From assembly GCF_030028105.1 (NCBI RefSeq), contig NC_092379.1, positions 44,564,150 through 44,628,149 of the forward strand: DNA of 64,000 nt, read 5' to 3'. The notes under the pieces are model-generated. The model did no database searches and was not told where the DNA came from. It was given only the letters and a program-made list of their open reading frames with translations. Positions 1 through 56,873 of the stretch are shown piece by piece. This DNA comes from Mobula birostris (taxonomy: Eukaryota). The stretch's first letter is position 1. Each line of letters starts with the position of its first letter. Made by a program: the position numbers and the translations under genes.

Positions 1-745
1 TACCGCATAGCCCTCTATTTTTCTAAGCTCCATGTACCTATCTAAGAGTCTCTTAAAAAACCCTACTGTATCCATCTCTACCACCTTTGTTGTCAGTGCA
101 TTCCACACACCCACCACTCTCTAGGTGAGAAACTTACCTCTGATGTCCCCCTTATACCTACTTTCAAGCACCTTAAAACTATGCTCCCTCATGTTAGCCA
201 TTTCAGCCCTGGGAAAAAGCCTCCGGCTATCCACACGATTAATGCCTCTCATCATCTTATACGCTTCAACCAGGTCACTTCTCATGTCCTGACTAATCAA
301 GAATCTATCAACCTCTCTGCCCTGAATATACCCAATGACTTCTCCTCTGTGACAATGAATTCCACAGATTCTCTGGCGAAAGAAATCCTTCCTCATCTCC
401 ATTCTAATTCGACAAACCTCTGTTCTGAGATTGCTTCCTCTGGTCTTAGGCTATCCCATCATAGAAAACATCCTCCCCATATCCACTCTAGAGGCCTTTC
501 AGTATTTGACAGGTTACAATGAGATCCCTCCCCCTCATTCTTCTGAATTCAAATGAGTACAGGCACAGAGCCATCGAACGCTCCTCGTACGACAAGCCTT
601 TCAATCCTGGACCTTTCAATCACTTTCGTGACCCTCCTTTGAACCCACTCCTGTCTTGGCACACCCTTTGTTAGATATTGGGCCCAAAACTACCTTCAAT
701 ATTCCAAGTGAAGCCTTATAAAATGTGAACATTACATCCTTGTTT
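1..745 (-). mobile_element. Two adjacent CR1 LINE 3'-end fragments (degenerate)
   Basis: Minus-strand translation DLVEAYKMMRGINRVD...FPR...HSFKV and MRKDFFRQR match the C-terminus of CR1 ORF2 (compare the intact copy at 53009-54295). Confidence 0.8.
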
Positions 746-1204
746 TGATACGCTAGCCATCATTGGTGGGGTCTGAACCTGGAGCAAGTGTGAACATCTC
801 CTTGGCTGCAGATGTGAAGGTTTATTTCCAGGAGTCACTGGACAGTAACCAGAAGAGAAGCTTACTCAACACCAAGGAGCACACGTCCAACCGTTAACCA
901 GAAGCTAGGTGAGGGTCAAAGTGTCCATCCCAGCTCCCCTTCAGCGTACCATTTCTATACAACTCTGGCTCCTTAGTACAGGAGGATACTGCGGACTGCG
1001 TCAAGCCTTTTGCCCGGGATACTTTAGGTTGGAGGAATATGAAAGGACACACACTGATTAAACAGTTCACTCTTCAGGCAAAAGCCTCAAGATAACCACC
1101 TTCTTGGAGGAGCACCTCCAGCTGGAGTACTGGAATGGTGTAATCATGCCAATAGATTGACAGGCACTGCTTCCATCTACTGTGGACAAAGGAACTTTAT
1201 AAAG

Positions 1205-1278
1205 CAGGGGCTCCCAACCTGGGGCCCCTCGGTTGATGGTAGGGGGTCGATGGCGTAAAAGAGGGTTGTGAACCCCGG
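1205..1278. mobile_element. 74-bp hAT-type MITE
   Basis: Imperfect TIRs CAGGGGCTCCCAACCT / GGGTTGTGAACCCCGG. Flanks TTATAAAG (1197-1204) and TTACAAAG (1279-1286) form a 7/8-identical 8-bp TSD. Confidence 0.7.
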
Positions 1279-1789
1279 TTACAAAGGTGAACAGATGGTG
1301 CAGACTACGACAACAGAAACTTTGCAAGCAGGAAGTGGCATTAACAAGGCGTAGCATATTGAGTACGTAGACATATTAACCGGATACAACTCAGTTCTTT
1401 GCCACGGACACACCATCCATACTAATCTTTCCCACCTCCAGCTCATCCATACAGTAAAATGCAAGCGGTAATGTGGGGGTGGGGGGGGAGGTGTGAAATC
1501 ATGCAATTGCTCCAGTGAGCGGAATGACAGACAGCCTGTTACCGGAATGAGCCAAGTGCTCTCCGTTATTTCACACACTGCCATGACGTGTGGGATACAG
1601 AGGCTCCTCAGTACAAGCAATTGATACACATGTGACTTAAAGCCAAGGTGACAGCAGCAGCTTCAGCAAGATAAATCATGACAAGCCATGGGGAATAAGA
1701 TCACCTTTCTTCACTATAATCCACGCTTCCCTCATCCACGTCACCTGCATTCCCACCCCACAAGCCTTTCCAGCGCATCAGTGTCTGTA

Positions 1790-2197
1790 GCCCCCACCAG
1801 CCACAATAGACTCCCAGACTAATCTCAATCCTCCGCTATCTGCAAGGGGTCTCTGCCACTAATCACACCCCCCTTCACCCACCCCACCCTTCAGGTTTCC
1901 ACGCCACTCATTCATCCTCGCCGCTCTCCCCGAAAGCAAGACAAGGTCTACACTCGCCCATTTGCCTCCGTTCAGGGCTGCAAACAGTTCTTGCAGGCGA
2001 AGCGGTGCTTTCCTCTCGGGGCTATTCGCTGTATCTGGAGCTCCTGCCGTGGCCTCCTCGACATCGGAGGACCAACACAAATGGGGTGGGGGGGGGGGGT
2101 TCTTCATCGAGCACCTTCTCTGGGTCCGCTGAGACAGCCAGGGTATCCCAATGGCCACCCACTTCAATTTGACTTCCCGCTGCCACCCCAGTGTCTG
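1790..2197 (+). mobile_element. Penelope-like element relic, GIY-YIG endonuclease region
   Basis: Frameshifted translation [43 protein letters not shown] resembles the PLE motifs VIYCIRC..CGLLYIG / RF.EH / PVA.HFN. Confidence 0.7.
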
Positions 2198-2213
2198 CTC
2201 TACAACTACATAC

Positions 2214-2361
2214 CTGCTCATCAGAAGCCAGGGAAGTGAAGAGGGGTATAATGTCACTTTTCAAAAACTCCAGCTCCACAACCTTTGCAAATTCACCCAA
2301 CTTTGATGCTGCTGCCTGGCGGACCACTGGTGTGTCATCTGAGCACAAGCTGTGGAAAAGT
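2214..2361 (-). CDS. PPP2R1A/B: PP2A scaffold (A) subunit-like exon, equivalent to PPP2R1A exon 5 (HEAT repeat 5 region)
   Basis: tttctgcag| (Q)[49 protein letters not shown] |gtatgt; 148 nt, phase 2 to 0. Closely matches recalled PP2A-A sequence and exon size. Diagnostic residues are mixed between A-alpha and A-beta. Confidence 0.93.
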
Positions 2362-2529
2362 CTGCAGAAAGAATAAAATTAAAGGTCACATAGGAGTAGT
2401 CGCCCATTGATGCAGAACTTAACAATTCGCAAGCAGAAATACAAGCACTAAAAATTGACATTTTTGCAATTAATGTTTCTAAATCAGAAGCTAGTAAAAT
2501 ATTTTGCTGAACCCATCATCATTATGTGC

Positions 2530-2910
2530 TGCGTCATATGCTATGGGTGGTCACGGTCTTTCCATGACCCTGATTGTTCTCCGTAAAGTTTTCTACAGAA
2601 GTGGTTTGTCATTTCCACCTTCTGGGCAGTGTGTGTCTTTACAAGGTGGGTGACCCCCAGCCCATTATCAATACACTTCAGAAACTGTCTACCTGGCGTC
2701 AGGGGTCGCATAACCAGGACTTGTGATCTGCACCGGCTGCTCATCCACCACCTGATCCCATGGCTTCACCTGACCCTGATCGGGGCGGGGGCGGGGGCGG
2801 GGGTGGGGGGGGGGTGTATCTAAGGGGTGCTACACCTTGCCCAAGGGTGGCCTGCAGACCAGCAGAAAGAAGCCTTACACCTCCTTTGGTAGAGACGCAT
2901 CTCCACCACA
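2530..2910 (-). mobile_element. RTE-related short interspersed element (copy 1)
   Basis: Reverse-complement homolog of 3665-4035; contains the Bov-A-like 3' motif GAAGG..ATG.CAAACCACTTC. Confidence 0.6.
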
Positions 2911-3664
2911 CCATCCAAAAATCCAATATTTGTGGTATTCAGTTTTTATCCTGAGAAATACTTCAAGATAGCAACAGAACATAGAAATTTACTGAACATT
3001 ACAGGCCCTTCAGCCCACAATGTTGTGCTGACCACGTAACCTACTCTAGAAGCTGCCTAGAATTTCCCCACCATACAGCCCTGTCTTTTTCTGAAACAAC
3101 TGACTGTGTCTGAAAGTTTACACAAATGACACCACAAAAAATTTTAATTCAGGGAGTAAAGCGGCTGGAAGTGAACCCCAGATATGGGACTCCTGCACTT
3201 GGAGCAGAACAGAGCCATTGGTTGTGGACTGCAGGGGCACACAGTTACCAAAGCAACCTTCTCGTCCGACAAAACTCAAACACCTCTGAACAGGTGAAAT
3301 CCTCTGCGCGCCAGATTAATCAAAATGGCCCTGAAGCAGAGCAACAGGCTTGACAAGACACGGCTCTCAAAAAGAGCACGCCTTTGTAAATGACAAGGCC
3401 ACTTCAACCCCACAGCCGAGAGTAAGCGATGAGCACCACTCCACTCTGATGCACCTCGGCTTTTGCTCCTTCCTCACTAAAAACACACAAAAAACCTTCA
3501 GTTTATGTCATTAAAAACAAAAATGCCACACTTTCTGTGCTATTTTGGGGCTGATTATTCTCTAAACTAGAAACTTCTACCCACTCAGTTAAAACAAGGT
3601 CCTGTCCACCATGGTGGTAGCATCTTATCGCCAATAAAACCAAATTATACCGAAATTGGGTGGC

Positions 3665-4035
3665 AGGAAGGAAATACGTCCCTGCCAAAGGAGGTGTAAG
3701 GCACTCCTTCCCTCCACTGGCCTGCAGGTCACCCTAGGGCAAGGTGTAGCACCCGCTTAGCCTCCCCGATCGGGACTACGTGAAGCCGTGGGAGCAGGTG
3801 GTGGACGGTTGTATGAGCAGCAGGTGCAGATCTCAACTCCTGACACTGACACCAGGCAGACAGTCTCGGAAGCGTATTGATAATGGGCTGGGGGTCACCC
3901 GTCTTGTAAAGACACACGCTGCCCAGAAAGAAGGAGATGGCAAACCACTTCCGTAGAAAACTTCGCCAAGACAATCGCGTCCACGGAAAGACCCACGATC
4001 GTCCACACCATACGACACGGTACATAATGAGCGAT
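3665..4035 (+). mobile_element. RTE-related short interspersed element (copy 2)
   Basis: Shares GGAGGTGTAAGG, CTTGTAAAGACACAC and CAAACCACTTC.GTAGAAAA with the inverted copy at 2530-2910. Confidence 0.6.
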
Positions 4036-4131
4036 ACTACAGAATGTAGATTTTCTACAATAATACTGTAATATTCCTAGCTAACTTCTATCATGTTCAT
4101 CTGCAGCATTCCAAGGGAGGAAAGTACTTAC

Positions 4132-4364
4132 TGACGCAGCTCGGTCTTTACAGAGCTGGATACCCGAGGGTAGCAGACACTGAAAAGGCTGCATGCCGAA
4201 GTCCTGGACGTGAACCAGTCACCACAAGTCAGGCGCTTGACCAGTGGCACAAAGTGGACTTCTAGGTCTGCAGGAGAGTGCTCGTGGGAGATGGCTCGCA
4301 GTGAATCGATGGCTTTATCTCGTACTACCGATTTTTCCACCGTTGCCAGGTTCTCCAAGGGAGG
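4132..4364 (-). CDS. PPP2R1A/B: PP2A scaffold (A) subunit-like exon, equivalent to PPP2R1A exon 4 (HEAT repeats 3-4)
   Basis: cccactaatcag| [77 protein letters not shown](Q) |gtaagt; 233 nt, phase 0 to 2; joins 2361 in frame. Confidence 0.95.
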
Positions 4365-4796
4365 CTGATTAGTGGGAAAGAATTAAACTGAAACACATCT
4401 TCGTTTTACTCTACCTCTAAGAAACACAATATTTAGAAACAATCTTTAAGATAAATTCTTAAATTGCTGAGAATTAGGAATTCTCATAAAGAAAATGAGA
4501 CAGAGAAACATTTAAAGGTAGAACAATATAGAGCCGTGCTGGAGGACAAAAGACAAACTATCAAGAACTGTATAAATCAAAGGACATATTTTCTCAATCA
4601 CAGAAATTCCCAAGATTCCTAACCAGAAAACACTGTAGTAATATTAAATGGAAATTACACTGACACGTTCCTAATTATCAGTAATTACTATTTCATCTTC
4701 AAATTAAGTACCAATAATTGTTCATCCTATGAGGTTTTAATAAGCAAATAAACATGAAGCTGCCTGTCATAATAATTTTGCCAAAGTTTGAGGGAA

Positions 4797-5662
4797 GTCC
4801 ATGGTCATCCACTTTGTTAGAAGAAATAAAAGTGTAAACTACTTTCTAAATTGGGAGAAAATTCAAGAATCCGAGGTGCAAAGGGACTTGGGAGTCCTCG
4901 TGCAGCATTCACTAAAGGTTAACTTGCAGGCTGAGGAAGGCAAATGCAATGTTAGCAGTCATTTCGAGAGGACTAGAATATAAAAGCAGGGATGTAATGT
5001 TAAGGTTTCATAATGTATTGGTGAGGCATCATTTAGAGTATTATGAGGAGATTTGGGCCCCTCATCTAAGAAAGGAGGTGCTGACATTGTGCAGAGTTTC
5101 AAGGAGATTCACAAAAATAATACTGGGAATGGAAGGCTTGTCACGTGAGGAGTGTTAGATGGCTCTGGGCCTGTACTCGTTGGAGTTCAGAAGAATGAGA
5201 AGAGACCTCATTGAAACCTATGAAATGTTGGAAGGTCTGAATAGAGTGGATGTGCAGAGGATGTTTCCTATGGCAGGGGAGTCTAAGGCTAGAGGACACA
5301 GCCCCAGAATAGAGAGATATCCTTTTAGAATGAAAATGATGAGGAATTTCTTTAGCCAGAGGGTGGTGAATATGTGGAATTCTGGGCCACAGGTGGCTGT
5401 GGAGATCAAGTCATTGGGTATATTTAAGGCAGAGGTTGATAGGTTCTTGATAGGTTCATGGCATCAAAGGTTACTGGGAGAAGACTGGGGAGTGGGGCAG
5501 AGGAGGGGAAAGAAGGATCAGCCATGATTGAAAGACAAATTGATAAGACTCTTGATTAATCGCAGCATGGAAGGATACAGGGAGAAGGCAGGAGATTGGG
5601 GCTGAGAGGGGAAAATGGATCAATGGGCCAAATAGCCTAACTCTGCACCTATATCTTATAGA
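4797..5662 (+). mobile_element. CR1 LINE 3' fragment
   Basis: QRDLGVLV, LVRHHLEY, LYSLEFRRMRRDLIETY and FFSQRVVNMWN motifs broken by stops and frameshifts; CR1-type 3' UTR. Confidence 0.9.
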
Positions 5663-6024
5663 ACTATTCAAACAACAACTGTGCCCACGTTTCAGTTTAG
5701 AATTGCAGGCATCACAGAGGCTCCTAGAAAACGTTTCTGAATTGCTATTTTCTGTAATACAAAGCCACGCCATCTCAGCGTTCTTCAAGAAACACTGCTA
5801 AGAGTTTGTGATATTTTATATACAGCCTCCACCCACACATGAGCGAATTGGATTCCTTACGTAAATGCTTTAAGAATTCTCTGCCTGTGCTCGCAGGTAA
5901 TTTTACACAAAAAGAAAACATTTTTGAAAGGAGTATCAATACAAAAGAATGTACACACTCTACACTCAACATACTGAACGCTGGAATGTCTAATTTGGAA
6001 CCACTGCAAACAATAAAGTAAAAC

Positions 6025-6630
6025 ATGGAACAGTACAGTGCAGAAACAGGCCATTCAGCCCACAATGTTGTGCTGAACCAGCTAAAAAGAAAATCAAAAA
6101 CCACCAAGAACTAATCCCTCCTACCTACACTATGTCCATCTCCCTCCATCTTTCTCATACCCAGGTGCCTATCCAAAAATCTCTGAAAAGCCTCTACCAT
6201 CATAGCAGTCAATGTATTCCAGGCATCCACCACTCTGATGGTAAAAAAACTTACCCCTCACATCCCCCTTGAACCTACCTACCCACTCTCACCTTTAATG
6301 CATACCTCTGGTATTAGACATTTAATTCCTGGGAAACAGATACTCCTCTCTACTTTATCTATGCACATGCTTCTCATAATTTTACAAACCTCTATCAGAT
6401 CTCCCTCGGCCTCCAGCGCTTCAGAGAAAACATAAGTTTATCCAGCTCTCATGATCGCATGTCCTCTGAACGAGGCAACATTCTGGCGAGCCTCTTCCGC
6501 ATCGACCCCAAAGCCCCAACATCTTTCCTATAGTGGGACAATCAGAACTGCATGTAATACTCCAGACGTGGCCCACCCAGAGTCTGATAAAGTTGCAGCA
6601 CTTCCTCTAAAGCAGGCAGCATCCTGGTTA
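6025..6630 (-). mobile_element. CR1 LINE 3' fragment
   Basis: Starts with the reverse-complemented CR1 tail (catggaacagtacag..aggccattcagcccac) followed by degenerate ORF2 C-terminus. Confidence 0.75.
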
Positions 6631-7075
6631 AACCTCATTGATCGAGCTACTTTGGTGGTTTCATTAATCGATTTCATTACTTTAATTCTGAATTGTCCTG
6701 TGATGAACTGATCACTGAAAATTATTTTAATTTGAACTATGCCCTGTAATAGCCTGAGGCCCTCGTTATATAATTTCAGAATCTTGTTCCCCATTACGGG
6801 TATTTAAAAACAATACAAGTATGTTATTTTAAATAAATATTTGATGCATAGGACCATTGCATCTGGGCATTAAAATCTGTGTTTTGTTTCCCCCGGTTGG
6901 GCTCATGTTGAACGTATATTTGGTCAATACAGAGCAGAGGTTTCAGTGTTCGGGGGATGGTATCAGTCCGTGTAGGTTTTCCAACAGGCTGCGCGGGTGA
7001 ACCTGGATCAGGGGTAGAGTAACTACACTTCACTGTAGCAATTCTCAATGATACACCCCTCCAATATTTCAACCA

Positions 7076-7209
7076 GGTCCTGAAGAAGGGTCTCGGCCAG
7101 AAACATCGACCGCTTACTCTTCTCCACAGACGCTGCCTGAGCTGCTGAGTTCCTCCAGCGTTTTGTGAGAGTTGCTTTGGATTTCCAGCATCTGCAAACT
7201 TTCTCGTGC
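7076..7209 (+). mobile_element. Penelope-type terminal repeat with a degenerate minimal hammerhead ribozyme (7076-7111)
   Basis: GGTC-CTGAAGA-A-GGG TCTCGG CCA-GAAA-CATC-GACC, followed by the family tail gctgcctgagctgctgagttcctccagc...ttccagcatctgca. Confidence 0.75.
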
Positions 7210-7758
7210 CTACAAATATGTTGGGGCAGCACAAAGCCTCATCTGCCTCAAAGATTTTATTGCAAACAATAAAAGCAGAGAGGGTTCTGTATGTGTCCAT
7301 TTACCCCTCATTCAAGCAACCCATCATAACAAAGAAAGATTACAGGGACATTGCCTGGTCTGGAGGACCTGAGTTATATGGAAAGATTGAATACGTTAGG
7401 ACTTCTTTTTAACTTGGAACATAGAAGATTGCAAAGAGATATGACAGAAGGAGACAAGATTATGAGGGGTTGAGATAGGGTAAATGCAAGCAGTCATTGT
7501 CCCCTGAGGTTGGATGAGACTGCAGTTGAGGGTGATATGAAGGATCTTCCAACAATGGAACAAAAACAAAAAGAATAACATTAGATCAAGTCCTTTGAGT
7601 AAACATATACTTAATTTCCTCAACAATTTTCCAAATTAAACAATGAATATTGTGGATAGCAAATTGACTTTGGAGTAGTATATACATACAACTTTCTTAT
7701 TGCCCTAATCAAAGACTGGCAGGACAGTCAAGGTAAGAAGGTATAACAATAATCTTAC

Positions 7759-7868
7759 CTCTAGTTTTTTAATGAGTCTGGCCTCCTGTGCCTTCAATCT
7801 CTCCTTCTGATACTTTTCATGTTCTTCCTTCAATTTGTCTACAATAGATCTCTTGTCAGATGCTGTCT
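7759..7868 (-). CDS. CEP350: CEP350-like coiled-coil exon, second internally deleted copy (exon E)
   Basis: ccctaacag| (E)TASDKRSIVDKLKEEHEKYQKERLKAQEARLIKKLE |gtaaga; 110 nt, phase 1 to 0. Resembles recalled CEP350 ETTSD...KSVVNQLKKEQKKRQKERLKAQEASLIKQLE. Confidence 0.8.
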
Positions 7869-8155
7869 CTGTTAGGGACGCAATCAAATCAAAGTTATAA
7901 TAGGTAGCAGCTTCCAATTCAACCAATTATTTATCATTCAAAATATACACCTCAGCAGGGAGAAATCAACTAACAATTTTACTTAGTTTCTATTCATTTA
8001 TCGCTACCTGAAGCTTAAGTTTCCAATTAAGATCCATCTGATTCAATGCAGTAATATCTGTCAGAATTAAATGGAAACTCTCACATACCATTTTGTTTTG
8101 TTTATCACACATGTACTGAGAGCCCCCAGTCTTAGAACAGATACCGACTAACACA

Positions 8156-9600
8156 TGTAGGGTTCTTGGTAATGTTAACTGCTAAGGTTAATGAAATGGC
8201 GTCTCCGTAATGCTAACTGCTGATGTAATAGTTTCTCTGTAGCTGCGATATTTGGGTTTTAACTACAGATAACAGGGAACTAACCAAATGAGAGACACAT
8301 TATTCTATCTTGTTTGTCTGGGAACCGAGTTTTTGTGGTTTTTCGGTCGAGGCGAGTGAGGAGGTAGAATGAGTGCGCGGAGTGCTCGGTGATCACCGGA
8401 CGAAGTCTACGGGAACTCGAGGGTCCAGCGGTTGGCAACGTTTCGGCGGAGGTCATTTAGGGAGGAACACCGGAGGCGTGAGCTCCAACAATTTTGTGCA
8501 CAAACTGTTAACTTTAACAAGAGTGATGCTTTTGTCTTCTATATTTGGTTTCTCTACTAACCACACAACAAAATAAGGGTTATAAAGTGTAATCATTTGA
8601 TAGCTAGATAGAATTGGGGACCACGTGACCGAGGCCCCAGACTGTGAGTACTCTGCACTCATTCTTGGGGTTCTGTGGTTGGTATCGGAGATCCGTGAAG
8701 GGCTACCCAAAGTGAGTCACCCCTTGAACCAGCTTCAGTGTGGTTACCCTCCCTTGGGGAAGAAAGGGAAAGGGAAAAGGGGACGGGAGGTTGGAGAATA
8801 TCTAAACCCATCGGAGCCCTTTCGACAGATGCAAAATGCGAGGAGGCTTTTCAGTCGCTGAAAGAGTTGCTGACCCAGACACCGGTGCTGGCTCTTGCAG
8901 AGCCCCGACTACCGTATGTTGTATCAGGATCAGGGCTGGTTCTGCCTGAGAAGTATCGGAGCATTGCGTTGAGTTCACTTCATGATGATTCTGGACATTT
9001 GGGGGTGGAAAAGACCTATGGTTTTTCTGGCCCTGAATGAAGTTGGAGGTTGAAGAGTACTGCAAGTGTGCATTTGCTGCATACGCCGGAAGACACTGCC
9101 TGTGCAGGCAGCTCCTCTGTCATACCTGCAGAGTGCAGGGCTCCTGGACCTGGTGTGTATGGATTTCCTGTCGAAAGAACCCGATGCCAGCAACACGGCC
9201 AATGTCTTAGTCATCACGGACCACTACACTGGATATGCTCAGGCTTTTCCTATCAAGGACCAGAAGGCGACTACGGTGGCAAAAGTGTTATGGGAGAAGT
9301 ATTTCATGCATTATGGCCTTCCCCAGGCGGATACATAGCGACCAGGGATGGGACTTCGAGAGTAGACTCATCTATGAGTTACTGGGCATGCTGGGAGTTG
9401 AGAAATTGAGGACCATGCCCTATCACCTGCAGGGCAATCCCCAGCCTGAGAGGTTTAAGCTTGGGACCCTGGAGATCAGCAAGGAGAGCAGGTGGAGTTA
9501 ACATATCGGGCATCTGGTTCACTGTACCCGAAATGAAGCTACTGAGTGCACGCCATATGCAGGAAGCCAAGGCGTTACTAGTGAAGGCTTGAAACATGGA
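8156..9600 (+). mobile_element. Heavily deleted Gypsy LTR retrotransposon (LTR piece, RT/RNaseH linker, integrase)
   Basis: TGTAG start; CEEAFQSLKELLTQTPVLA, LHDDSGHLGVEKT, CICCIRRK, LDLVCMDF, LVITDHYTGYA, RIHSDQG.DFES and PYHLQGNPQPERF are HHCC plus DDE integrase motifs. Confidence 0.9.
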
Positions 9601-10693
9601 TTGTCCCATATAACTGCTGAAAAGGCATGTTTAATTGGGGCCCATGCAACTGTCCGAGGCTTCACCTTTAGTTTGGAGAAAGTGGGAGAAACCTAAGTCA
9701 AACTTGAGAGTAAGAACTAGTTCTACCAGGTGAGGAAAGATGGTGATGAAGGGGAACTGATGAGGTCTGTTGTCCAGAAAGAAGCAGAACTTTAAGAACT
9801 TCCTGGAAGGGGATGAAAATGTATAAACACTAAACCCATAGTGAAAATAAAGTGATCTGGGCCAGGCAACTGAAAGTGATTGAAGTGATGGAGAGATTGC
9901 AGACCAGATAATGTTCTAAGTGTCGGTTGCCAGAAAAACATTGGCAAGAACTCAAGGAAGAACGCTTCCTACTTCTTTCTAAAATTAGGACTACATTATC
10001 TGTTACATTGATAAAACCAGACAGGCTTCCGGTTACCATTGCATCTCTATTGGTAGAGTAATCCTTCAATACCGTACCATATGAATAGCCTGGATTGTGG
10101 GAGCCCAGGTCGGTCTTACAAGAGATATTGTTAAGCCTGGAAAATTGTAGCTATGGAGGAAAGATTGGATAAGCTTGGGTTGTTTTCTAGTCTTGAGATG
10201 TATAAAATTGGGAGGATTAAATGGCAGAAATGAGAAGGGCTTATTTCCTGAACAGGGGGATTAAAAAAAAAAAACTGAGGTCCATAGTAACTGCTGGTAG
10301 TATTAAAAGTATTTTCACTCAGAGGATGGTAGAGAGATCTGAAATACTTCCAAGGCATAAATTCCCCTCATATTTAAAAAGTAAATGAATATCTGAAGCG
10401 CTGTGATCAACTGGGCTACAGAGCCTGAGGTAGGACGTGGAATTAGAATGGGTAGCTCTTTTCTTGACCATCACAGATGCAATTCCCAACATATTTATTT
10501 TTATGGTTCTGTGAGCTTGGCTTAGGAAATAGGCAGGTAGGTTTTATTTTTAGAAACACAGTTTAGTTGTTCAACTAAATTTTAGAAGTGTTTATACTTG
10601 TAAACTTTCAACTTAAACTTTCTTTTATCAAGTGTTTTTGGAATGTGTCATCTCAGGTGTTTACAGAGAGAACATTTTGAGATGCAGACGTAC

Positions 10694-10773
10694 CCTTTTT
10701 AACAAAGCAACTCAATGACACATTAGATCCTTCACCCTCAGGAAGCGATTTCCAGCTCTTTTCAGATTCAGTC
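10694..10773 (-). CDS. CEP350: CEP350-like exon D
   Basis: ctttttgttttcag| (R)TESEKSWKSLPEGEGSNVSLSCFVKK |gtacgt; 80 nt, phase 2 to 1. Resembles recalled CEP350 RSETAKNWKSLTESERSRGSL. Confidence 0.75.
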
Positions 10774-10941
10774 CTGAAAACAAAAAGCAGAAAACTAATT
10801 TTGAGCTTAAGAGCTTGGCAGATAAATATCATATTGTCTTTGGAATTTTGCAGTGACAAAGGATCGCAGATCGACATTGTAGACTGCTTTTCTTTTCACA
10901 AATTCTGCCTGATTCCGTGCACGTTACAGCAAGCTACTCAC

Positions 10942-11004
10942 AACATTTCTGAGCCAAATCCCACAGACTCAGGAGCACAGCAAATTTCACAGATTATCAT
11001 TAAA
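10942..11004 (-). CDS. Possible optional 63-nt cassette exon C (no recognised homology)
   Basis: ttctattctgcag| LMIICEICCAPESVGFGSEM |gtgagt; phase 2 to 2, open in the frame set by the flanking exons. Confidence 0.3.
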
Positions 11005-11432
11005 CTGCAGAATAGAATGAATTATGTCACTGGATGGAACAATCAGCTATTGAAAGAAAACCTGCTAGAAATTTAGGTAAACTTTTTGAAAACAGAAATC
11101 AAAATATCACAGGTGCTGGAAATGTAAAGAGAATGACAAAGTATTCAGCAGGTGAAGCAGTGTCTAAAAAGAGAGAAACAAAATTACTGAAATAATATTT
11201 CAAAAGTCACTGTCATTGTTTCATGCTCCACCTCCTCAGTAGAAAGTACTGTACTACTCTTTAAAGAAGTCTGCTAAATAAATGAACAACAGTCACGTGC
11301 AACCTAATTTAAAAATAAGTACTTTCAATAGGGGAGAGGCCATCCCATTATGTTTAACTTATAAAACAGTGACACTACCAGTATTCTGAGAAGTCCTTTT
11401 CCAACTAAGGCTGTATTGCCCAGTGACATTAC

Positions 11433-11563
11433 CTTTGTAGAGAAAGTGGTTCAGCCTTGGGCTTCTCAGCAGCAATGGAGGAAGGGGTTTTGATTTGTGG
11501 TTTGGTGGAACTGGACACTTTGCTTAGTTTTGCTGGAGTCCTTTTAATCGATCCATCACAGGA
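11433..11563 (-). CDS. CEP350: CEP350-like exon B
   Basis: ttctttctcttgtattaccag| SCDGSIKRTPAKLSKVSSSTKPQIKTPSSIAAEKPKAEPLSLQ |gtaatg; 131 nt, phase 0 to 2. Resembles recalled CEP350 SYDEFIKKTEAELS...TAKPQIKTLSSASEKPKIKPL. Confidence 0.8.
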
Positions 11564-12619
11564 CTGGTAATACAAGAGAAAGAAAACGGTGAAATGTTCA
11601 AAGGTTCATTTTATTGTCAAAGTATGCACGTACAACTCTGATACTTGTCTTCTCCAGATAGCCCTGAAATACAGAAAGACCATGAGAGTTGATGAAAGAA
11701 AAGACACCAACTCTCCCCACCATCAGTACGACAAAGAAAAGAAACAATAACAATCTCCGACCCCCTCGCCTGCAAAACAGACCAGTCACAGTAACATCGA
11801 AACCCCCAACCCCACGTTACACACAAAATATTTACAGCTCACCCACCCACCAACCAGCCACAATTAACAAAACACCAAAACCTGAAGGAAACCAATATGA
11901 AGTACAGTCCAAAATGCACATATGTCTCAGGATATTGGAAACAGCTTTCCATCGGCATACGAAGACAGTGGCTGCAAATTCAACAAATCAGCAAAAGCAT
12001 TTTCAACTTAATCAATCCAATTTTAGTTGGTAAATTAATCAAGGCTGACAACTGAAAATATTCAGAGGATGGCAAATCAATTTGGCTAAATGCTGTAAAA
12101 AATAAATTGTAAAGCCTGCAACAATTCAGATTTCTCCAAACTTTCAGAAAGCATTGCCTCCTGCTGCTTTAACATAGCAGATACAAAGCAGGAGAATAGC
12201 AGCAATTGGGGAGAGACAACCGAACGCACTATTGCATACTTTTCAAAGACTTTTGAAAGTCAGAAGCAATATAGCAATGCAAAGGGCCTTAAGAATGAGT
12301 TGAGGGTGATATAAAGGATTTTCCAGCAATGGAACAGAAACAAAAAGAATAAAGGTAGATCAAGTCCTTTGAATAATCATGTAATTTCCTCAAACACCAG
12401 GAAATCTGCAGATGCTAGGATTTCAAGCAACACACATAAACATTCACCAGCAACTTTTATGTGTGTTATTGAATTTCCTCAAAAATTTTCCCAAATTAAA
12501 CAATGAATATTGTGGATAGAAAATTGATTTTGTAGTAGTATTATACATACAACTTTCTTATTGCCCTAATCAAAGACTGGCAGGACAGTCAAGGTAAGAA
12601 GGTGCGACGATAATCTTAC

Positions 12620-12777
12620 CCTTAGTTCGTTAATGAGCCTGGCCTCCTGTGCCTTCAATCTCTCCTTCCGAAGCTTCTGCCCTTTCTTCAATTTGTTTAC
12701 AACAGGTTCATGTTTCCTCAGATCATCTTTCAGTGCATGAATCCTGCCCTCGATGTCACTCTGCTCAGATGCTTTCT
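12620..12777 (-). CDS. CEP350: CEP350-like coiled-coil exon A
   Basis: cccgaacag| (E)KASEQSDIEGRIHALKDDLRKHEPVVNKLKKGQKLRKERLKAQEARLINELR |gtaaga; 158 nt, phase 1 to 0. Strong match to recalled CEP350 SDQSDIEGRIRALKDELRKRKSVVNQLKKEQKKRQKERLKAQEASLIKQLE. Confidence 0.85.
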
Positions 12778-12889
12778 CTGTTCGGGATGCAATCAAATCA
12801 AAGTTATAATAGGTAGTAGCTTCCAATTCAACCAATTATTTATCATTCAAAATACATACCTCAGCAGGGTGAAATCAACTAACAATTTT

Positions 12890-13592
12890 TGCTTGCGCCT
12901 CGGCGAACGAAAACATACTTGGTCTGTTGTAAGTCCATGGGCAGGAAAGCGGGTGTTGATCCGTGGTGGGACGTCGGGACTGGAGCAAGTGTTCCAAGCC
13001 GCTCCCGGAGTTTTCTTAATGGAATTTGTACATTTTTGCCTTCTTTCGTGGAGCCTCCGCCACGCTATCAGGATATCACGAGTGATTGCCGATTGCGTCG
13101 TCTCTGATCTGGGCCGACATTTACGTGCCAGGAAGCACCTAATTAATTAGCTTGTTTATTTTGGCTTTTTTTTCTTACAGATGTGCTGTGTGCCTCCCGA
13201 CTACCGCTACACCCCTGCATGCTTCGCGGCCCGGAGGTTGGGGACACTGCCGAATATTGATGATTGCGATAGTCTGTACACTTATCTAATCTGATTGGTC
13301 ACTTTGATGCAGCACAGGCTACGCTGAAAACGCCGTGCATGGCGGGGGGACTACACACATGTGCACTCGGCAGAATGAACGGAACTGAACCCCCGCAACC
13401 CAGAAACAATCTCTCTTTACAAATGGCTTTTTAGTGAAAATATTGCTATATTACCATTATCCTAATTAGTATTACTTTTATAATGCTCACATAACAGTAC
13501 TTGTGTATTTATTTTTGATTTTTCTTCGAGATCTACTGGGAAAGTCTCAAAGATCGACTGATCGATCGTGATCGACAGGTTGGCGAGTCCTC
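12890..13592. mobile_element. hAT-like non-autonomous DNA transposon fragments
   Basis: CpG-rich block ending GGTTGGGGACACTG (13249) and a second end GATCGACAGGTTGGCGAGTCCT with GATCGA subterminal repeats; both resemble hAT termini. Confidence 0.5.
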
Positions 13593-14607
13593 AGTCTAGC
13601 CTTTTCTGCACAACCCATTGAAGCACTGACGAATCAAAAATCTATCAACCTTTATTTTATACTGAATGGCTTGGCCTCCACTGCTGTCTGTGGTAATGAA
13701 TTCCCTTTATTTTATACTGAATGGCTTGGCCTCCACTGCTGTCTGTGGTAATGAATTCCAGTTTCACTGCCCACATCCTGAAGTAATTCTTCTTCATTTC
13801 TGTTCTAGATGGATATCCCTCTTCTCTGAGACTATGCACTCTGGTCACAGATGCCTCCACTATAGGAATAAATTGAATTGAATTGACTTTATTTCTTACA
13901 TCCTTTACATACATGAGGAGTAAAAATCTTGACGTTACCTCTCCATCTAAACGTGCAATGTGCAATCATAGTAATTGATAATAATCTATAATAAAGAGAA
14001 CAGTGAATGCAATATAGAATACACTTAGATCAGAGTAAATTAATTAGTCTGATGGCCCGGTGGAAGAAGCAGTCCCGGAACCTGTTGGTCCGGGATTTTA
14101 TGCTGTGGTACCACTTCCTGGATGGTAGCAGCTGGAATACATTATGGTTGGGGTGACTTGGTTCCCCAATAATCCTATGGGCCCTTTGTACACTTCTGTC
14201 TTTGTAAAGGTCCTGAATCATGGGAAGTTCACAACTATAGATGCACTGAGCTGTCTGTAAAGTCCTGCAATTAAGGGAGGTACAGTTCCCATGCCAGTCA
14301 GGATGCTCTTAATTGTGAGAATGTAGAAAGTTTTTTTTGGATTTTGGGGCTGAAGCCAAACTTTGCAAACTGTCTGAGGTGAAACAGGCACTTTTGTGCC
14401 TTTTTCACCACACAGCTGCTGTGTACACACCACATGAGGTCTTCGAAGATGTGGATGCTAGCTACCCTCTCAACCCCAGATCCACTGATGTCAATAGGTC
14501 CTAGCCTGTCTCCATTCCTCCTGTAATCCACAACCAGCTCCTTTGTTTTTGCGACCTTGAGGGAAGGGTTCTTTTCTTGACACCACTGTGTCATTTTGGC
14601 CACCTTG

Positions 14608-17011
14608 TGTCATATGGCGGTGGCTGGGAACGGGCCCAAGTGCAAGACACAGACACTGAACTACTAGGGACAGGACTAGGATACAGGGCGATGGCAAGGA
14701 CACGGACAGGAAAACCAGGAACCTGGAACAGGACTGAATAAGAGAGCTAGGAGCCCGGGCTTGGTCTCCGAGCCATAAACTGGACAAGGACCCAGTACCT
14801 GGGTCTTGCCTCTGGCTCGGACCCCAGAACTAGGCAAGTATGAGGCTTGGCAGGCAGGCAGGACGACGCTGGACTTTTCAGGCTTGAGGCTAGAGACTAG
14901 AGGCAAGGCTTGGCAGGAGGCGGGAGGCTGGAGTCTTCAGGCTTGAGGCTAGAGGCCAGAGACTTGGCTTGGCTTGGCTAGAGGCTAGAAGCCAGAGACT
15001 TGGCTTGGCTTGGCAAGAGGCTAGAGGCTGGCGTCTCCAGGCTTGGGGCTAGACAGGAGGCTGGCGTCTCCAGGCTTGGGGCTAGACAGGAGGCTGGCGT
15101 CTCCAGGCTTGGGGCTAGACAGGAGGCTGGCGTCTCCAGGCTTGGGGCTAGACAGGAGGCTGGCGTCTCCAGGCTTGGGGCTAGACAGGAGGCTGGCGTC
15201 TCCAGGCTTGGGGCTAGACAGGAGGCTGGCGTCTCCAGGCTTGGGGCTAGACAGGAGGCTGGCGTCTCCAGGCTTGGGGCTAGACAGGAGGCTGGCGTCT
15301 CCAGGCTTGGGGCTAGACAGGAGGCTGGCGTCGCCAGGCTTGGGGCTAGACAGGAGGCTGGCGTCGCCAGGCTTGGGGCTAGACAGGAGGCTGGCGTCGC
15401 CAGGCTTGGGGCTAGACAGGAGGCTGGCGTCGCCAGGCTTGGGGCTAGACAGGAGGCTGGCGTCTCCAGGCTTGGGGCTAGACAGGAGGCTGGCGTCTCC
15501 AGGCTTGGGGCTAGACAGGAGGCTGAAGTCTCCAGGCTTGGGGCTAGACAGGAGGCTGGAGTCTCCAGGCTTGGGGCTAGACAGGAGGCTGGATTCTCCA
15601 GGCTTGGGGCTAGACAGGAGGCTGGAGTCTCCAGGCTTGGGGCTAGACAGGGGGCTGGAGTCTCCAGGCTTGGGGCTAGACAGGGGGCTGGAGTCTCCAG
15701 GCTTGGGGCTAGACAGGGGGCTGGAGTCTCCAGGCTTGGGGCTAGACAGGGGGCTGGAGTCTCCAGGCTTGGGGCTAGACAGGGGGCTGGAGTCTCCAGG
15801 CTTGGGGCTAGACAGGGGGCTGGAGTCTCCAGGCTTGGGGCTAGACAGGGGGCTGGAGTCTCCAGGCTTGGGGCTAGACAGGGGGCTGGAGTCTCCAGGC
15901 TTGGGGCTAGACAGGGGGCTGGAGTCTCCAGGCTTGGGGCTAGACAGGGGGCTGGAGTCTCCAGGCTTGGGGCTAGACAGGGGGCTGGAGTCTCCAGGCT
16001 TGGGGCTAGACAGGGGGCTGGAGTCTCCAGGCTTGGGGCTAGACAGGGGGCTGGAGTCTCCAGGCTTGGGGCTAGACAGGAGGCTGGAGTCTCCAGGCTT
16101 GGGGCTAGACAGGAGGCTGGAGTCTCCAGGCTTGGGGCTAGACAGGAGGCTGGAGTCTCCAGGCTTGGGGCTAGACAGGAGGCTGGCGTCGCCAGGCTTG
16201 GGGCTAGACAGGAGGCTGGAGTCTCCAGGCTTGGGGCTAGACAGGGGGCTGGAGTCTCCAGGCTTGGGGCTAGGCAGGGGGCTGGCGTCGCCAGGCTTGG
16301 GGCTAGGCAGGAGGCTGGAGTCTTCAGGCTTGAGGCTAGGCCAGAGACAAGGCGAGGCTGGAGGCTGGAGACTTGAGGCGAGATGAGGCTGGGGGCTGGG
16401 GGCAGGAGATTTGAGGCGAGGCTGGAGGCAGGAGACTTGAGGTGAGGCGAGGCTGGAGGCTGGAGGCAGAAGAGTTGAGGCGATGCTTGGCAGGCTCCTC
16501 CTGGGCTGGGCGTGGATCTCCTGGGCAGGGCGCGGATCACCACCCGACAGAGACAAGGGACAGGAATGGACAGAAACAACACCCGGTAATGGCAAGACGG
16601 CCTGGCTTACCTGGGCAGAGGCAAGGGACAGGAAGGGAGCTAGGTACAGGGTGGCTCCAGGACAAGCCTGCTGGCAAGACGAGGTGAGTTTACCAGCAAG
16701 ACAAGGCAAGGCTTCTGGCAAAGCAAGGCGAGACGAGAACTTCAGGCGAGGCGAGGGTTACCGGCAAGACAAGGCAGGGCTTCAGGCCAGGAAACAGAAG
16801 GCAGGAGATGGGATACAAGGAGTACGGACAAGAACAATTCAGCAGTCACGCCTGGGTCTCTGAAGGTATTTATGCAGCCAGCCCCAACGAGCATCAGCTG
16901 CCTCAATTAGCTCAACAAGAACAGAAACAGGGTAGATAGGAAAACCTGGAGCAAGTGTCGATGGACCGGGCCGTGAACCGGAATATGGACTTCACGGACC
17001 GGACCATGACA
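14608..17011 (-). mobile_element. Solo LTR expanded by an internal minisatellite
   Basis: Termini TGTCAT...ATGACA; 5-bp TSD CCTTG / CCTCG; host LINE continues on both sides; TATA-like CATAAATA on the minus strand near 16870. Confidence 0.8.
15026..16325. repeat. 33-bp GC-rich minisatellite, about 39 copies
   Basis: Unit GGCTGG(C/A)GTC(T/G)CCAGGCTTGGGGCTAGACAGG(A/G); explains the 11-aa periodic ORFs in four frames. Confidence 0.97.
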
Positions 17012-22079: not shown

Positions 22080-23670
22080 AGAATAAAATAGTTTGTTAAC
22101 GTAGCAGCAGCCGTTCAATTCAATACATAAGATAGAAGAAGAAAAAAAAACAAAATAAAATAATAAATAAACAAACAAACAAATAAATAAATAACAGTAT
22201 AGGAAAACTGATTAGATTAACATCATGCAAAAACACAGAAATAATATACATTTAAAAAGTGAGGTAGTGTCTAAGGGTTCAAAGTCCATTTAGGAATTGG
22301 GTGGCAGAGGGGAAGCTGTTCCTGAAACGCTGAATGTGTGCTTTCAGGCTTCTGTACCTCCTACCTGGTGGAATTATTTAGAAGAGGGCATGTCCTGGGC
22401 ACTGGAGGTCCTTATTATTTGATGCTGCCTTTCTGAAACAGTGCTCCTTCAAAGATCTTCTGGGTACATTGTAGGCAAGTACCCAAGACGGAGCTGACTC
22501 AACTTACACCCTCTGCAACTTCTTTCCGTCCTGTGCAGTAGCACCTTCCCCACCCCACCACCCCCCACCCCTTACCAGACAGTGGTGTAGCCTGTCAGAA
22601 TACTCTCCACGGTACATCTATAGACATTTTTGAGTGTATTTGTTGACATACCAAATCTTTTTAAATTCAAAATTATGTATAGCTGCTGTCTGGCCTTCTT
22701 TGTAAATGCATCAATATGTTGTGACCAGGTTAGATTCTTAGAGATCTTGACTTCCATGAACTTGAAACTGCTCAGTCTCTCCATTTCTGATCCCTCTATG
22801 AGGATTGGTATGTGTTCGTTCGTCATACCCTCCTGGAAGTCTACAATCAGCTCTTTCGTCTTATTGACATTCAGTGCCAGGTTGTTGCTGTGGCACCACT
22901 CCACTAGCTGGCATATCTCACGCCTGTAGGACCTCTCATCACCACCTGAGATTCTACCAACAACGATTATATCATTAGCAAATTTATAGATGTTATTTGA
23001 GCTATTGCTAGCCACACAGTCAAGAGTGTAGAGAGAGTAGAGCAGTGGGCTAAGCACACAGCCCTGAGGTGCACCAGCGTTGATTGTCAGCAAAGCGAAG
23101 AGGTCATCACCAATCCGCACAGATTGTGGCTTTCTGGTGAGGAAGTTGAGGATTCAATTGCAGAGGGAGGGACAGAGGCCCAGGTTCTGCAACTTCTCAA
23201 TCAGGATTATGGGAATGATGGCATTAAATACTGAGCAATAGTCTTGTCATCAGTGTTTGTGTTGTCCAGGTGGTCTAAAGCCATGTAACGAGCCATTGAG
23301 ATTGCATCTGCCTTTGAACTATTGTGGCTATAGGCAAATTTCAATGGATCCAGGATCTTGCTGAGCCAGGAGCTCAGTCATGTCATGACCAACCTCTCAA
23401 AGCATCTCATCACTGTAGATGTTAGTGCTACCAGACCATAGTCATTAAAGCAGCTCACATTATTCTTCTTAGGCACTCATATAATTGTTGTCTTTTTGAA
23501 ACAAGTTGGAACATTTGCCCGAAGCAGTGAGAGGTTGAAAATGCCCATGAATACTCCCACCAGTTGGTTGGCACAGGTTTTCAGAGTCCTAGAAGGTACT
23601 CCATCGGGACCATCCACTTTGCGAGAGTTCACTCTCTTTAAAGACAGCTTAACATTGGCCTCTGATACAG
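22080..23670 (-). mobile_element. Rex1/Babar-type LINE fragment inserted in CR1
   Basis: GAPQGCVLSPLLYSLYT.DC, KFAND, WCHSNNLALNVNKTKELIVDF and YRCTVESILT. Confidence 0.9.
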
Positions 23671-28005: not shown

Positions 28006-29555
28006 GAAACATCCACTGCACCTCTTCCTATAGATGCTGCCTGGCCTGCTGTGTTCACCAGCAATGTTTATGTGTGTTGCTCATTATTTTGCCGACTGAA
28101 ATATTTCTCAATTTCTTTTGACATTTGAGATACCCATTAAAGACTATTAGATCAGCAACATCACACACAAAATGCTGGAGGAACTTGGATTTCCAGCATT
28201 TGCAGATTTTCTCGTGTTTATACAATCTACGCAGTTTTATCTCCTGCATCCATTCATCTGCCTATTTTGAGTACTGTATTTATTCCTGTAGCCGGTTTGC
28301 CTCTTCCTTTGCAGACTGAAATATTTCTTCTCAATTTCTTTTGTCCTTTGACAAGATTTGAGATGCCCATTAAAGACTGCTACATCATACAAAATGCTGG
28401 AGGAATCGGCCAATTTCTGTTGGACTGAGCGGGTTGAGCAGTTTGTAATCAACAAGGGGATGTTTGTCTCTCCGTATTTTTGGTCTTGTAGGAGCTGCAC
28501 TGCATTTGCAAATATCGTGTTTATAAGGGTGATTCATCAATTGATTGTCTGCATTTTTATGTGAGCAGTTTTAAAGTTAGGTGCAACAATAAAGCATTGA
28601 CTGATAGTAACACTTTAGCAAATGTGAGGAGTTCTGTGTTGAAAGAAGAAACAGTTATGGATATTTAAAAAAAAAGTCTACAATATGACTATATGCAAAG
28701 CAGAAAGAAATCGTTGCTAAGCCAATGAATAAGATGTGGTGCTTCATCGTTATCAATACTGTAAAATATATTCTATTACATCTACATCTGACTCTGTTAC
28801 AGACATCTGACTACGGCATCGAGTTTGCTGCTCGATGTTGAACCACTCTCCCGTTTCTCTGTGATGGACTCAACGGGAGGCATCATGTCTGACTGTGAGG
28901 TTGTGTCAGACTGCGCTGTATCTGTTGGAATCAGTCAATGTTCTGATCTAAAGTCAGTGAGGTGGTAAATGCTGGAATAGGGAACAAACTCGGGGAATGC
29001 TGGCAACACTAAGCCCCAAGCAGCTTGTGTGGAAAGAAAAACCAGTTAACACTCATGTCAGGGGTGTCTCTGAGAACAGTTCTGAGGAGAGATACTTTAA
29101 CTGTATTCCCACATGTTCTGGTTTACCTGTATCAGTGTTTCCAGCATTTCCTCTTTTGTTCCGTCCTTCGGGGGATCGCCATGGAAGTTGATGATTGTCT
29201 GATGGAAGAATCCTGCCATCAGCGTCCGGATTTATTCATTTCATCCAGACGAGATGCAGAAGGTGCCGGTAGAAAATGTTCCATCCAGTATTGACTCTCA
29301 GGAGGTAGCTACTCAGTTTTAGATTTACGCTGCCACTTCGCATTCCGCTCATCAGTAAGGAATCCGTATCCAGATGATATTGAATTTATTTTACTGTGTA
29401 AACTCATTCTCTGTCCCGCCAGTTCTGCGCCCTCTCTCGACCCTCTCACCGCTAAATGCAACAATAAAGTGGAAATATTACAGGACCCCCTCAAGCTGCA
29501 GCATCGGTTTCTGCTCAGTATTTTCTCAACTTGCTGTTCCCTGTCTCTCTTCCAG

Positions 29556-30456
29556 CGAACTTGGTGGCAATTGTGATCCTGTCCCTGGAGAAGTGCGGTC
29601 TCTCCAAATGTGTCACTCATTACCTGGTGGGAATGGCAGCGGCTGATCTCCTGGTCGTTATCTCCGATCCGTTGCTGAGGGGAACTGCTGTGATTTATTT
29701 TCCCCGATCATTCCTGCGAACCACTCCTGTGTGCAGACTTGGTCTATGGTTGATTTTTGCGAGCACCGCTGCCTCAGTCTGGCGGACTGTCGCTTTCACC
29801 GTCGATCGATTTGTGGCTATTTGCGGTGAGGAGCTGAAAACAAAATATTGCACGGAGAGAACGGCGGCTGTGGTTATCGGGACAATGATTATGCTGGCCT
29901 GTTTGGAGACTGTCCCCTGGGGCTTTATATCCGGGCCTGGAGAAATAATTGATGGTGTTCCCTGGGAATGAGTCCTTACACAGAGCTTCACAAACTCTCC
30001 CTCATGGGCCGCATTTGACATGTTTGACCTCATCTTAACCCTTGTGTCCCAATCTTTCTGATGTTGCTATTCAATATTCTGACTGTCAGGTGGATTCTAG
30101 TGGCCAGTCGAGCCCGCAGGAGGCTCCGGGGACAAAAGAGTAGAGAGAATGACAAGGACTGGGTGATGGAGAACCGACGCAAATCCATCGTTTTGCTCTT
30201 CAGCATAACCAGTAGTTTCATATTGTTGTGGGGAACATACGTGGTATTTTCTATCTGTAAATGGATTTCAATGAGTTTTGTTTATTCTGCCACGGATCCC
30301 TGTTACATCACACAACATACATCAGAAATGCTGCAGATTCTCATTTCCTGCACCAACACGTGTATTTATGTCCTGACTCAGAGCAAGTTCCGAGAGGAAC
30401 TAAAGAATGCGGTGAAATACCTACCGAATCGGATTTTGAAACTCATGAAACATTAG
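29556..30456 (+). pseudogene. GPR139/GPR142-like class A GPCR main exon, disabled
   Basis: ctctcttccag| ANLVAIVILS..KCGLSKC..YLVGMAAADLL, FTVDRFVAIC, KTKYCTERTA, ENRRKSIVLL, SCTNTCIYVLTQSKFREEL. In-frame TGA at 29969-29971 and a -1 frameshift near 30040. Upstream exon not identified. Confidence 0.88.

Positions 30457-42934: not shown

Positions 42935-43351
<417 letters not shown>

Positions 43352-56314: not shown

Positions 56315-56873
<559 letters not shown>

Follow-up and report, generated by a model that had tools for sequence, protein, structure and literature searches.

Transcribed PP2A scaffold-like and CEP350-like exons in the Mobula birostris genome that may represent one copy of a chimeric segmental-duplication family

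A 64,000-nucleotide (nt) stretch of the Mobula birostris genome (contig NC_092379.1; hereafter the window) carries on its minus strand six exons related to two genes, that of the centriolar protein CEP350 and that of the scaffold A subunit of protein phosphatase 2A (PP2A-A), which is made of HEAT repeats. A preliminary description had read these exons as a single gene, produced by exon shuffling, in which CEP350 coiled-coil exons run in frame into PP2A-A exons. In the order of the proposed gene, the six exons are the following.

12620..12777, minus strand: CEP350-like exon a, with 52 full codons, corresponding to about residues 2044-2096 of M. birostris CEP350
11433..11563, minus strand: CEP350-like exon b, an open frame with CEP350 homology
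10694..10773, minus strand: CEP350-like exon c, an open frame corresponding to about residues 2142-2168 of ray CEP350
7759..7868, minus strand: CEP350-like exon a', a second copy of exon a that is 48 nt shorter
4132..4364, minus strand: PP2A-A-like exon, residues 91-167, the region of HEAT repeats 3-4
2214..2361, minus strand: PP2A-A-like exon, residues about 168-217, HEAT repeat 5, with Gln at the position of Arg183

Together they make up 860 nt (158+131+80+110+233+148). As had been described, all six are open in the proposed phase, AG precedes and GT follows each of them, and the codons split across exon joints (AGG, GAG and CAA, read by eye) create no stop; the ends of the proposed junction also read as written, ...ARLIKKLE and [10 protein letters not shown]. 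The six-exon model running from CEP350 to PP2A has neither a start codon nor a first exon. The exons were searched singly.

Searching with exon a (52 residues) against 1.84 billion representative sequences returned 42 proteins at E ≤ 0.001. The long matches are mostly of 2,700-3,250 amino acids (aa), some of about 2100, and align near residue 2,000; the two looked up were named CEP350. Exons a, b and c correspond to residues 2065-2120, 2121-2166 and 2166-2192 of Narcine CEP350 and are colinear with residues 2041-2173 of the M. birostris protein, so that the reading of the first three exons as consecutive CEP350 exons was borne out by tblastn with ray CEP350. Identity to the true protein is 68% for exon a (Mobula CEP350), 78% for exon b (ray CEP350) and 63-70% for exon c (ray CEP350). 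No CEP350 piece beyond a, b, c and a' was found in the window by tblastn with the full-length CEP350 of eight cartilaginous fishes (E ≤ 0.01), in agreement with the preliminary description. One shark CEP350 showed spurious low-complexity matches to a 33-bp minisatellite of about 45 units (14875 to about 16400), which is free of stops in several frames of either strand.

The captured segment amounts to about 125 of 3210 CEP350 residues and includes neither the CAP-Gly domain (2551-2615) nor DUF4378 (3057-3191; coordinates from P0216), and PDB coverage of CEP350 is confined to the CAP-Gly domain. We take the M2 motif of CAP350 to lie in the DUF4378 region. The accessible part of one paper describes recruitment of FOP by this motif (PMC4357431). 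Residues ~2041-2170 of CEP350 (P0216, P0214 and six others) are near-invariant from sharks to rays and carry no domain or solved structure, a segment that is unannotated yet strongly constrained. The expectation that intact parental genes exist elsewhere was confirmed for CEP350 in two Mobula species, a protein of 3210 aa being annotated on a 117.8-Mb M. birostris contig and proteins of 3210-3251 aa on a 118.1-Mb M. hypostoma contig; for PP2A-A, a separate parental mRNA was found, as described below.

The best match of exon a was not true CEP350. It was P0121, a 163-aa NCBI protein of M. birostris named 'centrosome-associated protein 350-like' (XP_072106470.1, XP_072106471.1, XP_072106472.1 and XP_072106570.1), annotated on two contigs of at most 47.7 kb. 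In P0121, 64 PP2A-A-like residues lead into CEP350-like exons a and b, after which the frame has four further codons. Its first 64 residues match the Pfam PPP2R1A-like_HEAT family with 28.3 bits, and PP2A-A fragments align to this head at 46-85% identity (mostly 58-79%) over at most 48% of the query; the PP2A part presumably represents canonical residues ~233-297. The public name 'CEP350-like' thus hides a PP2A part. In its CEP350 part, P0121 is identical to the window at 46 of 53 positions in exon a and 40 of 46 in exon b (87% in each case). Compared with true CEP350, the two share nine substitutions and a one-codon gap in exon a, and four substitutions and a one-codon gap in exon b; because of these shared substitutions and gaps, the CEP350-like exons of the window and P0121 descend from one duplicate. 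The layout of P0121 points to the existence of a PP2A/CEP350 chimera family with the order PP2A then CEP350, opposite to that of the proposed fusion. Ten of the 42 matches of exon a were examined (P0121, P0122, P0123, P0125, P0127, P0128, P0137, P0148, P0152 and P0160), and a PP2A part was present in P0121; none of the nine others read as chimeric, P0122 being an unrelated repetitive protein. Among proteins of 90-285 aa, P0121 was likewise the only chimera.

The claim that the fourth exon repeats the first also held, and the repeat proved to extend into the introns, as direct-repeat, blastn and alignment comparisons delimited two blocks.

12298..12889, minus strand: duplicated block 1, comprising 112 nt of upstream intron, exon a and downstream intron
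7524..7980, minus strand: duplicated block 2, with the same upstream boundary, exon a' and downstream intron; homology stops at 7524

The blocks are 88-93% identical, in the intron as well as in the exon, and exon a' retains several parental residues that exon a has lost. Since introns were kept, the copies did not arise by retrocopying. The fragments could have been moved by transposon capture or transduction rather than by plain segmental duplication, an explanation that concerns their origin only and is compatible with the other readings. In the two copies of exon a the homologous stretch starts at an identical position, 112 nt before the exon, and the gene fragments are separated by retrotransposon remains and by repeats with high transcription. 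The repeat searches, however, found no terminal repeats, target-site duplications or transposon ends at the block borders, and we regard such a transfer as very unlikely. The retrotransposon remains include the following feature.

8738..9501, plus strand: decayed pieces of a long terminal repeat (LTR) retrotransposon integrase, recognised by eye as overlapping frameshifted open reading frames (ORFs) between exon c and exon a'

The identification of the last two exons as PP2A scaffold was correct. The translation of 4364-4134 corresponds to PP2A-A residues 91-167 (65 of the 77 residues agree with the solved alpha chain; E 3e-40) and that of 2360-2214 to residues 170-217 (36 of 48 identical to the solved chain, E 3e-29); the 2214..2361 exon also matches a Pfam HEAT model with 28.8 bits (cut-off 23.5). 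For exon 4132..4364, the best of 129 library matches (proteins of 42-135 aa) was 84% identical and the top ones all carried the canonical sequence. Because none of them exceeded 84%, its 12 differences belong to the copy in the window. In all, 12 of 77 residues (4132..4364) and 12 of 48 residues (2214..2361) depart from canonical PP2A-A, so that the extreme conservation typical of this family is not seen here. One change, in the 2214..2361 exon, places Gln where the parental mRNA encodes Arg183. R183Q is mentioned in papers on PPP2R1A disease variants.

The scaffold is also far from complete. Sequence for PP2A-A residues ~58-90 (the first 33 residues of P0019) had no match in the window by tblastn (best E 0.49), as expected from the preliminary description, which had noted the lack of upstream PPP2R1 sequence; this result covers residues ~58-90 and not residues 1-57. 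Three-frame translation of positions 1-2213 revealed no following PP2A exon. Instead of the complete array of 15 HEAT repeats, the window thus holds two exons, with neither residues ~58-90 nor, in 1-2213, the next exon. The C-terminal repeats of the scaffold are those that hold the catalytic subunit. Inside the intron between the PP2A-like exons (2519..4030) lies an inverted repeat pair, 2519-2904 and 3670-4030, whose arms are 72% identical and could pair in the pre-mRNA.

To analyze expression, we compared positions 2100-8000 of the window, at 90% likeness, with contigs of four small sequencing runs, three labelled organism A and one labelled organism B; the results concern the joints and pieces listed, namely 15 joints and the associated pieces out of larger sets (338 more joints and 28,731 more pieces). 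Among runs recorded as RNA, none contained the stretch. From spliced records and from empty bins of unique intron, we infer that these contigs are RNA. Parental PP2A-A mRNA was represented by contigs of depth 510-2016. Compared with the exons in the window, these contigs carry other letters at 8 of 146 and 15-18 of 231 positions; the intron is missing from them, and their loose ends at 4365 and 2213 read, by eye, as the adjoining exons of normal PP2A-A. The splice point between the two PP2A-like exons is therefore also used by the parental mRNA. The parental mRNA differs between organisms A and B at 4221, 4236 and 4308, in each case synonymously, as would be the case if A and B were closely related taxa, each with the local copy.

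The local PP2A-like pair was itself transcribed and spliced. Records 2 and 24 cover 2235/2280-2361 and pass without interruption to 4132-4220/4276, with 0-2 other letters in each piece and 0-3 for the joined contigs; the depth of local contigs was 14-28.5 (16 and 28.5 for records 2 and 24; record 17 in part). Splicing at 4132^2361 was exact in runs labelled as two organisms and used the sites given in the preliminary description. Record 2 carries 346 further letters downstream, and the local transcript therefore runs past the start of the window. None of the local-copy records (2, 24 and 17) reaches 4364. RNA-contig depth was high over 2519-2904 and 3670-4030, and there was next to none over the unique intron between them. 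The highest depth of the compared stretch, 45,000-130,000, was found at 7072-7208, a dispersed repeat with copies near 45529, 54382, 60351 and 63842. Intronic contigs (records 3, 9, 10 and 12; 3-5% different) were considered as a neutral yardstick for the PP2A part and rejected, because the 90% threshold biases them and their source is parental pre-mRNA or other copies.

Exon a' was covered in full by records 7 and 21 (368 nt, from two runs, depth 12-15) and record 28 (129 nt, from a third run, depth 98), which span 7759-7869/7870 with 3-5 other letters and no gap. In records 7 and 21, the 98 and 159 letters flanking a' match nowhere in 2100-8000. These flanks were not placed on 4364-4132 at 90% likeness, though that exon lay in the compared stretch; since either version should have been placed, they are neither exon 4364-4132 nor its parental counterpart. 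The a' contigs may come from other copies.

These observations bear directly on the gene originally proposed, in which a, b, c and a' would be spliced to the PP2A-like exons through a 7759^4364 joint, tethering HEAT repeats to a centriolar coiled coil. Several features are as such a gene would have them: the phases fit, neither the six exons nor the three split codons contain a stop, and the exons share strand and order. With residues 58-90 absent upstream in 60 kb, exon 4364 would moreover need some other upstream partner, and the contig depths are of the same order (12-98 for a', 14-28 for the local PP2A-like pair). In its accessible part, PMC11014585 proposes PPP2R3C, FOP and CEP350 as one complex with PP2A, so that the PPP2R3C-CEP350-FOP link invoked in the preliminary description is in print. 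The predicted joint, however, was absent among the 15 joints listed. The flanks of a' in records 7 and 21 lead into other sequence, record 28 stops exactly at 7759, and the a' contigs depart from the window at 3-5 letters in 111, which exceeds what the local PP2A-like contigs show, so that they may come from other copies. In addition, the annotated chimera P0121 runs the opposite way, and the CEP350 piece has neither CAP-Gly nor DUF4378. A single maintained gene of this design is improbable. What stands of the proposed exon-shuffled fusion is that the fragments are DNA-level copies with introns, that the PP2A-like exons are transcribed and spliced, and that a PP2A/CEP350 chimera is annotated; what lacks support is the CEP350-to-PP2A order.

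A misjoin, or a collapse of repeated copies, during assembly could also have brought the fragments together. The region is repeat-rich and contains a gap of 579 Ns (31155-31733), and related M. birostris copies sit on small contigs of at most 47.7 kb. Exons a and a' and their surroundings are nevertheless 88-93% identical rather than identical, each with its own indels; the variants particular to the window recur in RNA contigs at 4132^2361; and PP2A-like and CEP350-like exons are also neighbours in a second, independent assembly and annotation. An assembly artefact is thus the least likely of the explanations considered, and we give it hardly any weight.

We next asked how fast the copies have changed. 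In true CEP350, the segment of exon a differs by 0-1 residues among six ray proteins and by 3-4 between these and two sharks. In the window, exon a differs from true CEP350 at 15 of 53 positions (plus a one-codon gap) and a' at 8-9 of 36, and all three indels relative to true CEP350 comprise whole codons. At two positions both Mobula CEP350 proteins share a newer residue where the copies keep that of the other rays; because the copies keep the ancestral residue there, the duplication was not very recent. Between a and a', 25 of 347 aligned intron letters differ (7.2%) and 18 of 107 exon letters. With 33 codons paired by hand from the DNA alignment and those at two indels left out, the proportion of nonsynonymous differences (pN) was 15/78.5 (0.19) and that of synonymous differences (pS) 2/20.5, compared with 0.072 in the intron; pN thus exceeds the intron value about 2.6-fold (odds ratio 3.0, Fisher p 0.0025). 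This pattern is that of positive selection, and we take it as a hint of such selection acting on the CEP350-like exon.

Of the 23 differences between the PP2A-like exons and the parental mRNA, the 19 listed fall in nine nonsynonymous and eight synonymous codons, and at all nine listed nonsynonymous codons it is the parent that keeps the canonical residue. Judged from these codon counts, the PP2A-like exons are under strongly relaxed constraint, which could be either weak or absent. The preliminary description had taken the open frames and intact splice sites to favour a maintained gene. In simulations of neutral change at 3-6% divergence, all six frames remained open in 45-21% of cases and all 24 splice letters intact in 48-23%, giving a joint chance of ~0.2 to 0.05; only at ≥10% divergence, where it falls to ~0.006, would such intactness be telling. 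We therefore rejected the argument 'frames open, hence selected' as weak.

The same simulation lends some weight to the idea that the window holds dead debris, that is, pseudogenic leftovers of duplication in a decaying, repeat-rich histone-cluster region, transcribed by read-through or noise and open by chance, since intact frames and splice sites are expected in ~5-20% of neutral cases at 3-6% divergence. Ultra-conserved PP2A-A positions, including the equivalent of Arg183, are altered, neighbouring H1, H2A and 7TM receptor ORFs look broken, and the CEP350-to-PP2A model has no start codon or first exon. The copies also differ in design (a' is shortened; exon c is open in the window and closed in P0121), and local contig depth is in the tens, as against hundreds to thousands for the parent, although depth is a poor rank. 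Plain decay, on the other hand, would equalise exon and intron, whereas nonsynonymous change between a and a' lies 2.6-fold above the intron, with which pS agrees. Nor would decay be expected to leave three of three indels as whole codons or splicing exact in runs labelled as two organisms, and the ancestral residues at two positions indicate that the family is not very young, yet still open. We rate dead debris as unlikely, if the most serious of the rival explanations.

Taking these results together, we consider it on balance somewhat probable that a ray-lineage segmental-duplication family, in which intron-bearing PP2A-like and CEP350-like fragments lie next to each other on one strand, is represented in the window by one copy. 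A family that is young, transcribed, fast-evolving and chimeric, the duplication itself being not very recent, is the best-supported description. Its PP2A fragment would derive from a PPP2R1A-type scaffold gene (residues 91-217), and its CEP350 fragment would consist of three consecutive exons (~2044-2168 of 3210) together with an additional, shortened version of the first of them. In the unit that is transcribed, PP2A-like exons would be followed by CEP350-like ones. The window would then contain the CEP350-like tail of one unit (a, b and c), the truncated a', and the beginning of a PP2A-like unit extending beyond coordinate 1, where PP2A-like residues 218-297 and then a CEP350-like exon a would be expected, rather than one CEP350-to-PP2A gene. 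The copies are released from the very strong constraint on their parents, the CEP350-like exon changing faster than its own introns.

Several points weigh against a family of this kind. Residues 1-63 of P0121 have no match in the window (tblastn, E ≤ 1), and there is no PP2A-like unit upstream of exon a within 51 kb. P0121 stops four codons after exon b, where the window has an open exon c, so that the copies have no common ORF design, and the P0121 chimera is known here as an annotated gene model only. No contig among those listed links a CEP350-like to a PP2A-like exon of the window in either order; the contigs are not raw reads, they drop rare forms, and their RNA nature is inferred. The selection signal comprises 33 codons of one pair, with half of the changes between two indels, and nine nonsynonymous against eight synonymous codons in the PP2A-like exons fit relaxed constraint as well as function. 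A tandem array of P0121-like units was considered separately and found to be unsupported upstream, the PP2A piece of P0121 having no match in the window.

If the duplication family is accepted, any protein made from it would be a short HEAT-plus-coiled-coil polypeptide with neither the catalytic-subunit end of the scaffold nor the CAP-Gly and DUF4378 domains of CEP350. Because such a product would lack what makes either parent work, the only plausible role is that of a decoy or adaptor; it would be at most this, and neither a phosphatase scaffold nor a centriole protein. Copies that are transcribed but functionless are somewhat more probable than a translated, selected product. A more specific proposal is a positively selected multi-copy family of mobulids, in which B-subunit-binding HEAT repeats with an altered Arg183 are fused to the CEP350 coiled coil and act, for example in the germ line, as a decoy or adaptor in a PP2A-PPP2R3C-FOP-CEP350 centriole module. 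We regard this as improbable, but because PP2A, PPP2R3C, FOP and CEP350 are proposed as one complex in the accessible part of PMC11014585, the decoy or adaptor idea is worth testing.

The remainder of the window contains a number of unrelated features. A histone cluster occupies 42941-43351 (plus strand), 44296-44908 (minus), 56322-56828 (minus) and 57631-58005 (minus). Inspected by eye, the ORFs of H3 and H2B seem intact; H1 extends over two ORFs that overlap in different frames, and an H2A-like ORF has no canonical C-terminal half; the H1 and H2A-like ORFs are probably frameshifted. A rhodopsin-type seven-transmembrane (7TM) receptor extends over two plus-strand ORFs, 29531-29971 and 30061-30456 (Pfam 7tm_1, E 1.8e-12 and 0.0012), possibly an intronless receptor gene that is now broken. 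On the minus strand, the ORF at 38950-39363 encodes a GDSL-lipase/OSK-like domain, as in the esterase-type ORF1 of long interspersed nuclear elements (LINEs), and reverse-transcriptase ORFs were found at 22572-23120 and 53009-54295. Searching positions 1-16000 against Rfam at the gathering score returned nothing.

The two parents rank with the most conserved proteins of their kind, and they have been proposed to act together in a single centriolar phosphatase module. If the product of the duplicated exons is translated and selected, it would be a natural experiment on a scaffold fragment that is unable to hold the catalytic subunit and is tied to a CEP350 segment; if not, the locus would be a clean example of transcribed duplicate debris named as a gene by predictors and sequence readers alike. 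Should the positively selected fusion prove true, two partners of one complex would be naturally fused, with a change at Arg183, a residue whose substitutions are disease-associated in people.

The closest known relative of the copy in the window is P0121. Both carry exons a and b in diverged form (87%), with derived residues and two one-codon deletions in common, and P0121 joins these to a diverged PP2A-A-like HEAT piece. Unlike the window, P0121 has the order PP2A then CEP350, includes a PP2A part that is absent from the window, ends after exon b and has no a'. The PP2A scaffold A subunits (PPP2R1A/PPP2R1B) share homology with the window over residues 91-217, including the splice point. They differ from it in that the window has two exons of 84% and 75% identity, with Gln for Arg183 and with neither residues 58-90 nor the catalytic-subunit end; PP2A-A fragments from many animals are all equally distant, at 84%, from exon 4132..4364. 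CEP350 (CAP350) shares with the window three consecutive exons in the right order and phase, whereas the window retains ~125 of its 3210 residues, without CAP-Gly and DUF4378, and has 15 changes in a near-invariant segment of 53 residues.

Our literature searches found no paper on a PP2A/CEP350 chimera and, to our knowledge, well-documented chimeric duplicate genes are scarce in cartilaginous fishes. Chimeric new genes that arose by segmental duplication, through exon shuffling at the DNA level, are familiar from the jingwei-type genes of flies and the core-duplicon families of primates. The kind is therefore already known, and one member of the present family is already in public annotation. 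Like these genes, the copies described here keep their introns, have intact parents, exist as several diverged copies, are transcribed and show fast protein change; in contrast to them, the two parents of the copy in the window belong to one proposed protein complex, as the accessible part of PMC11014585 describes it.

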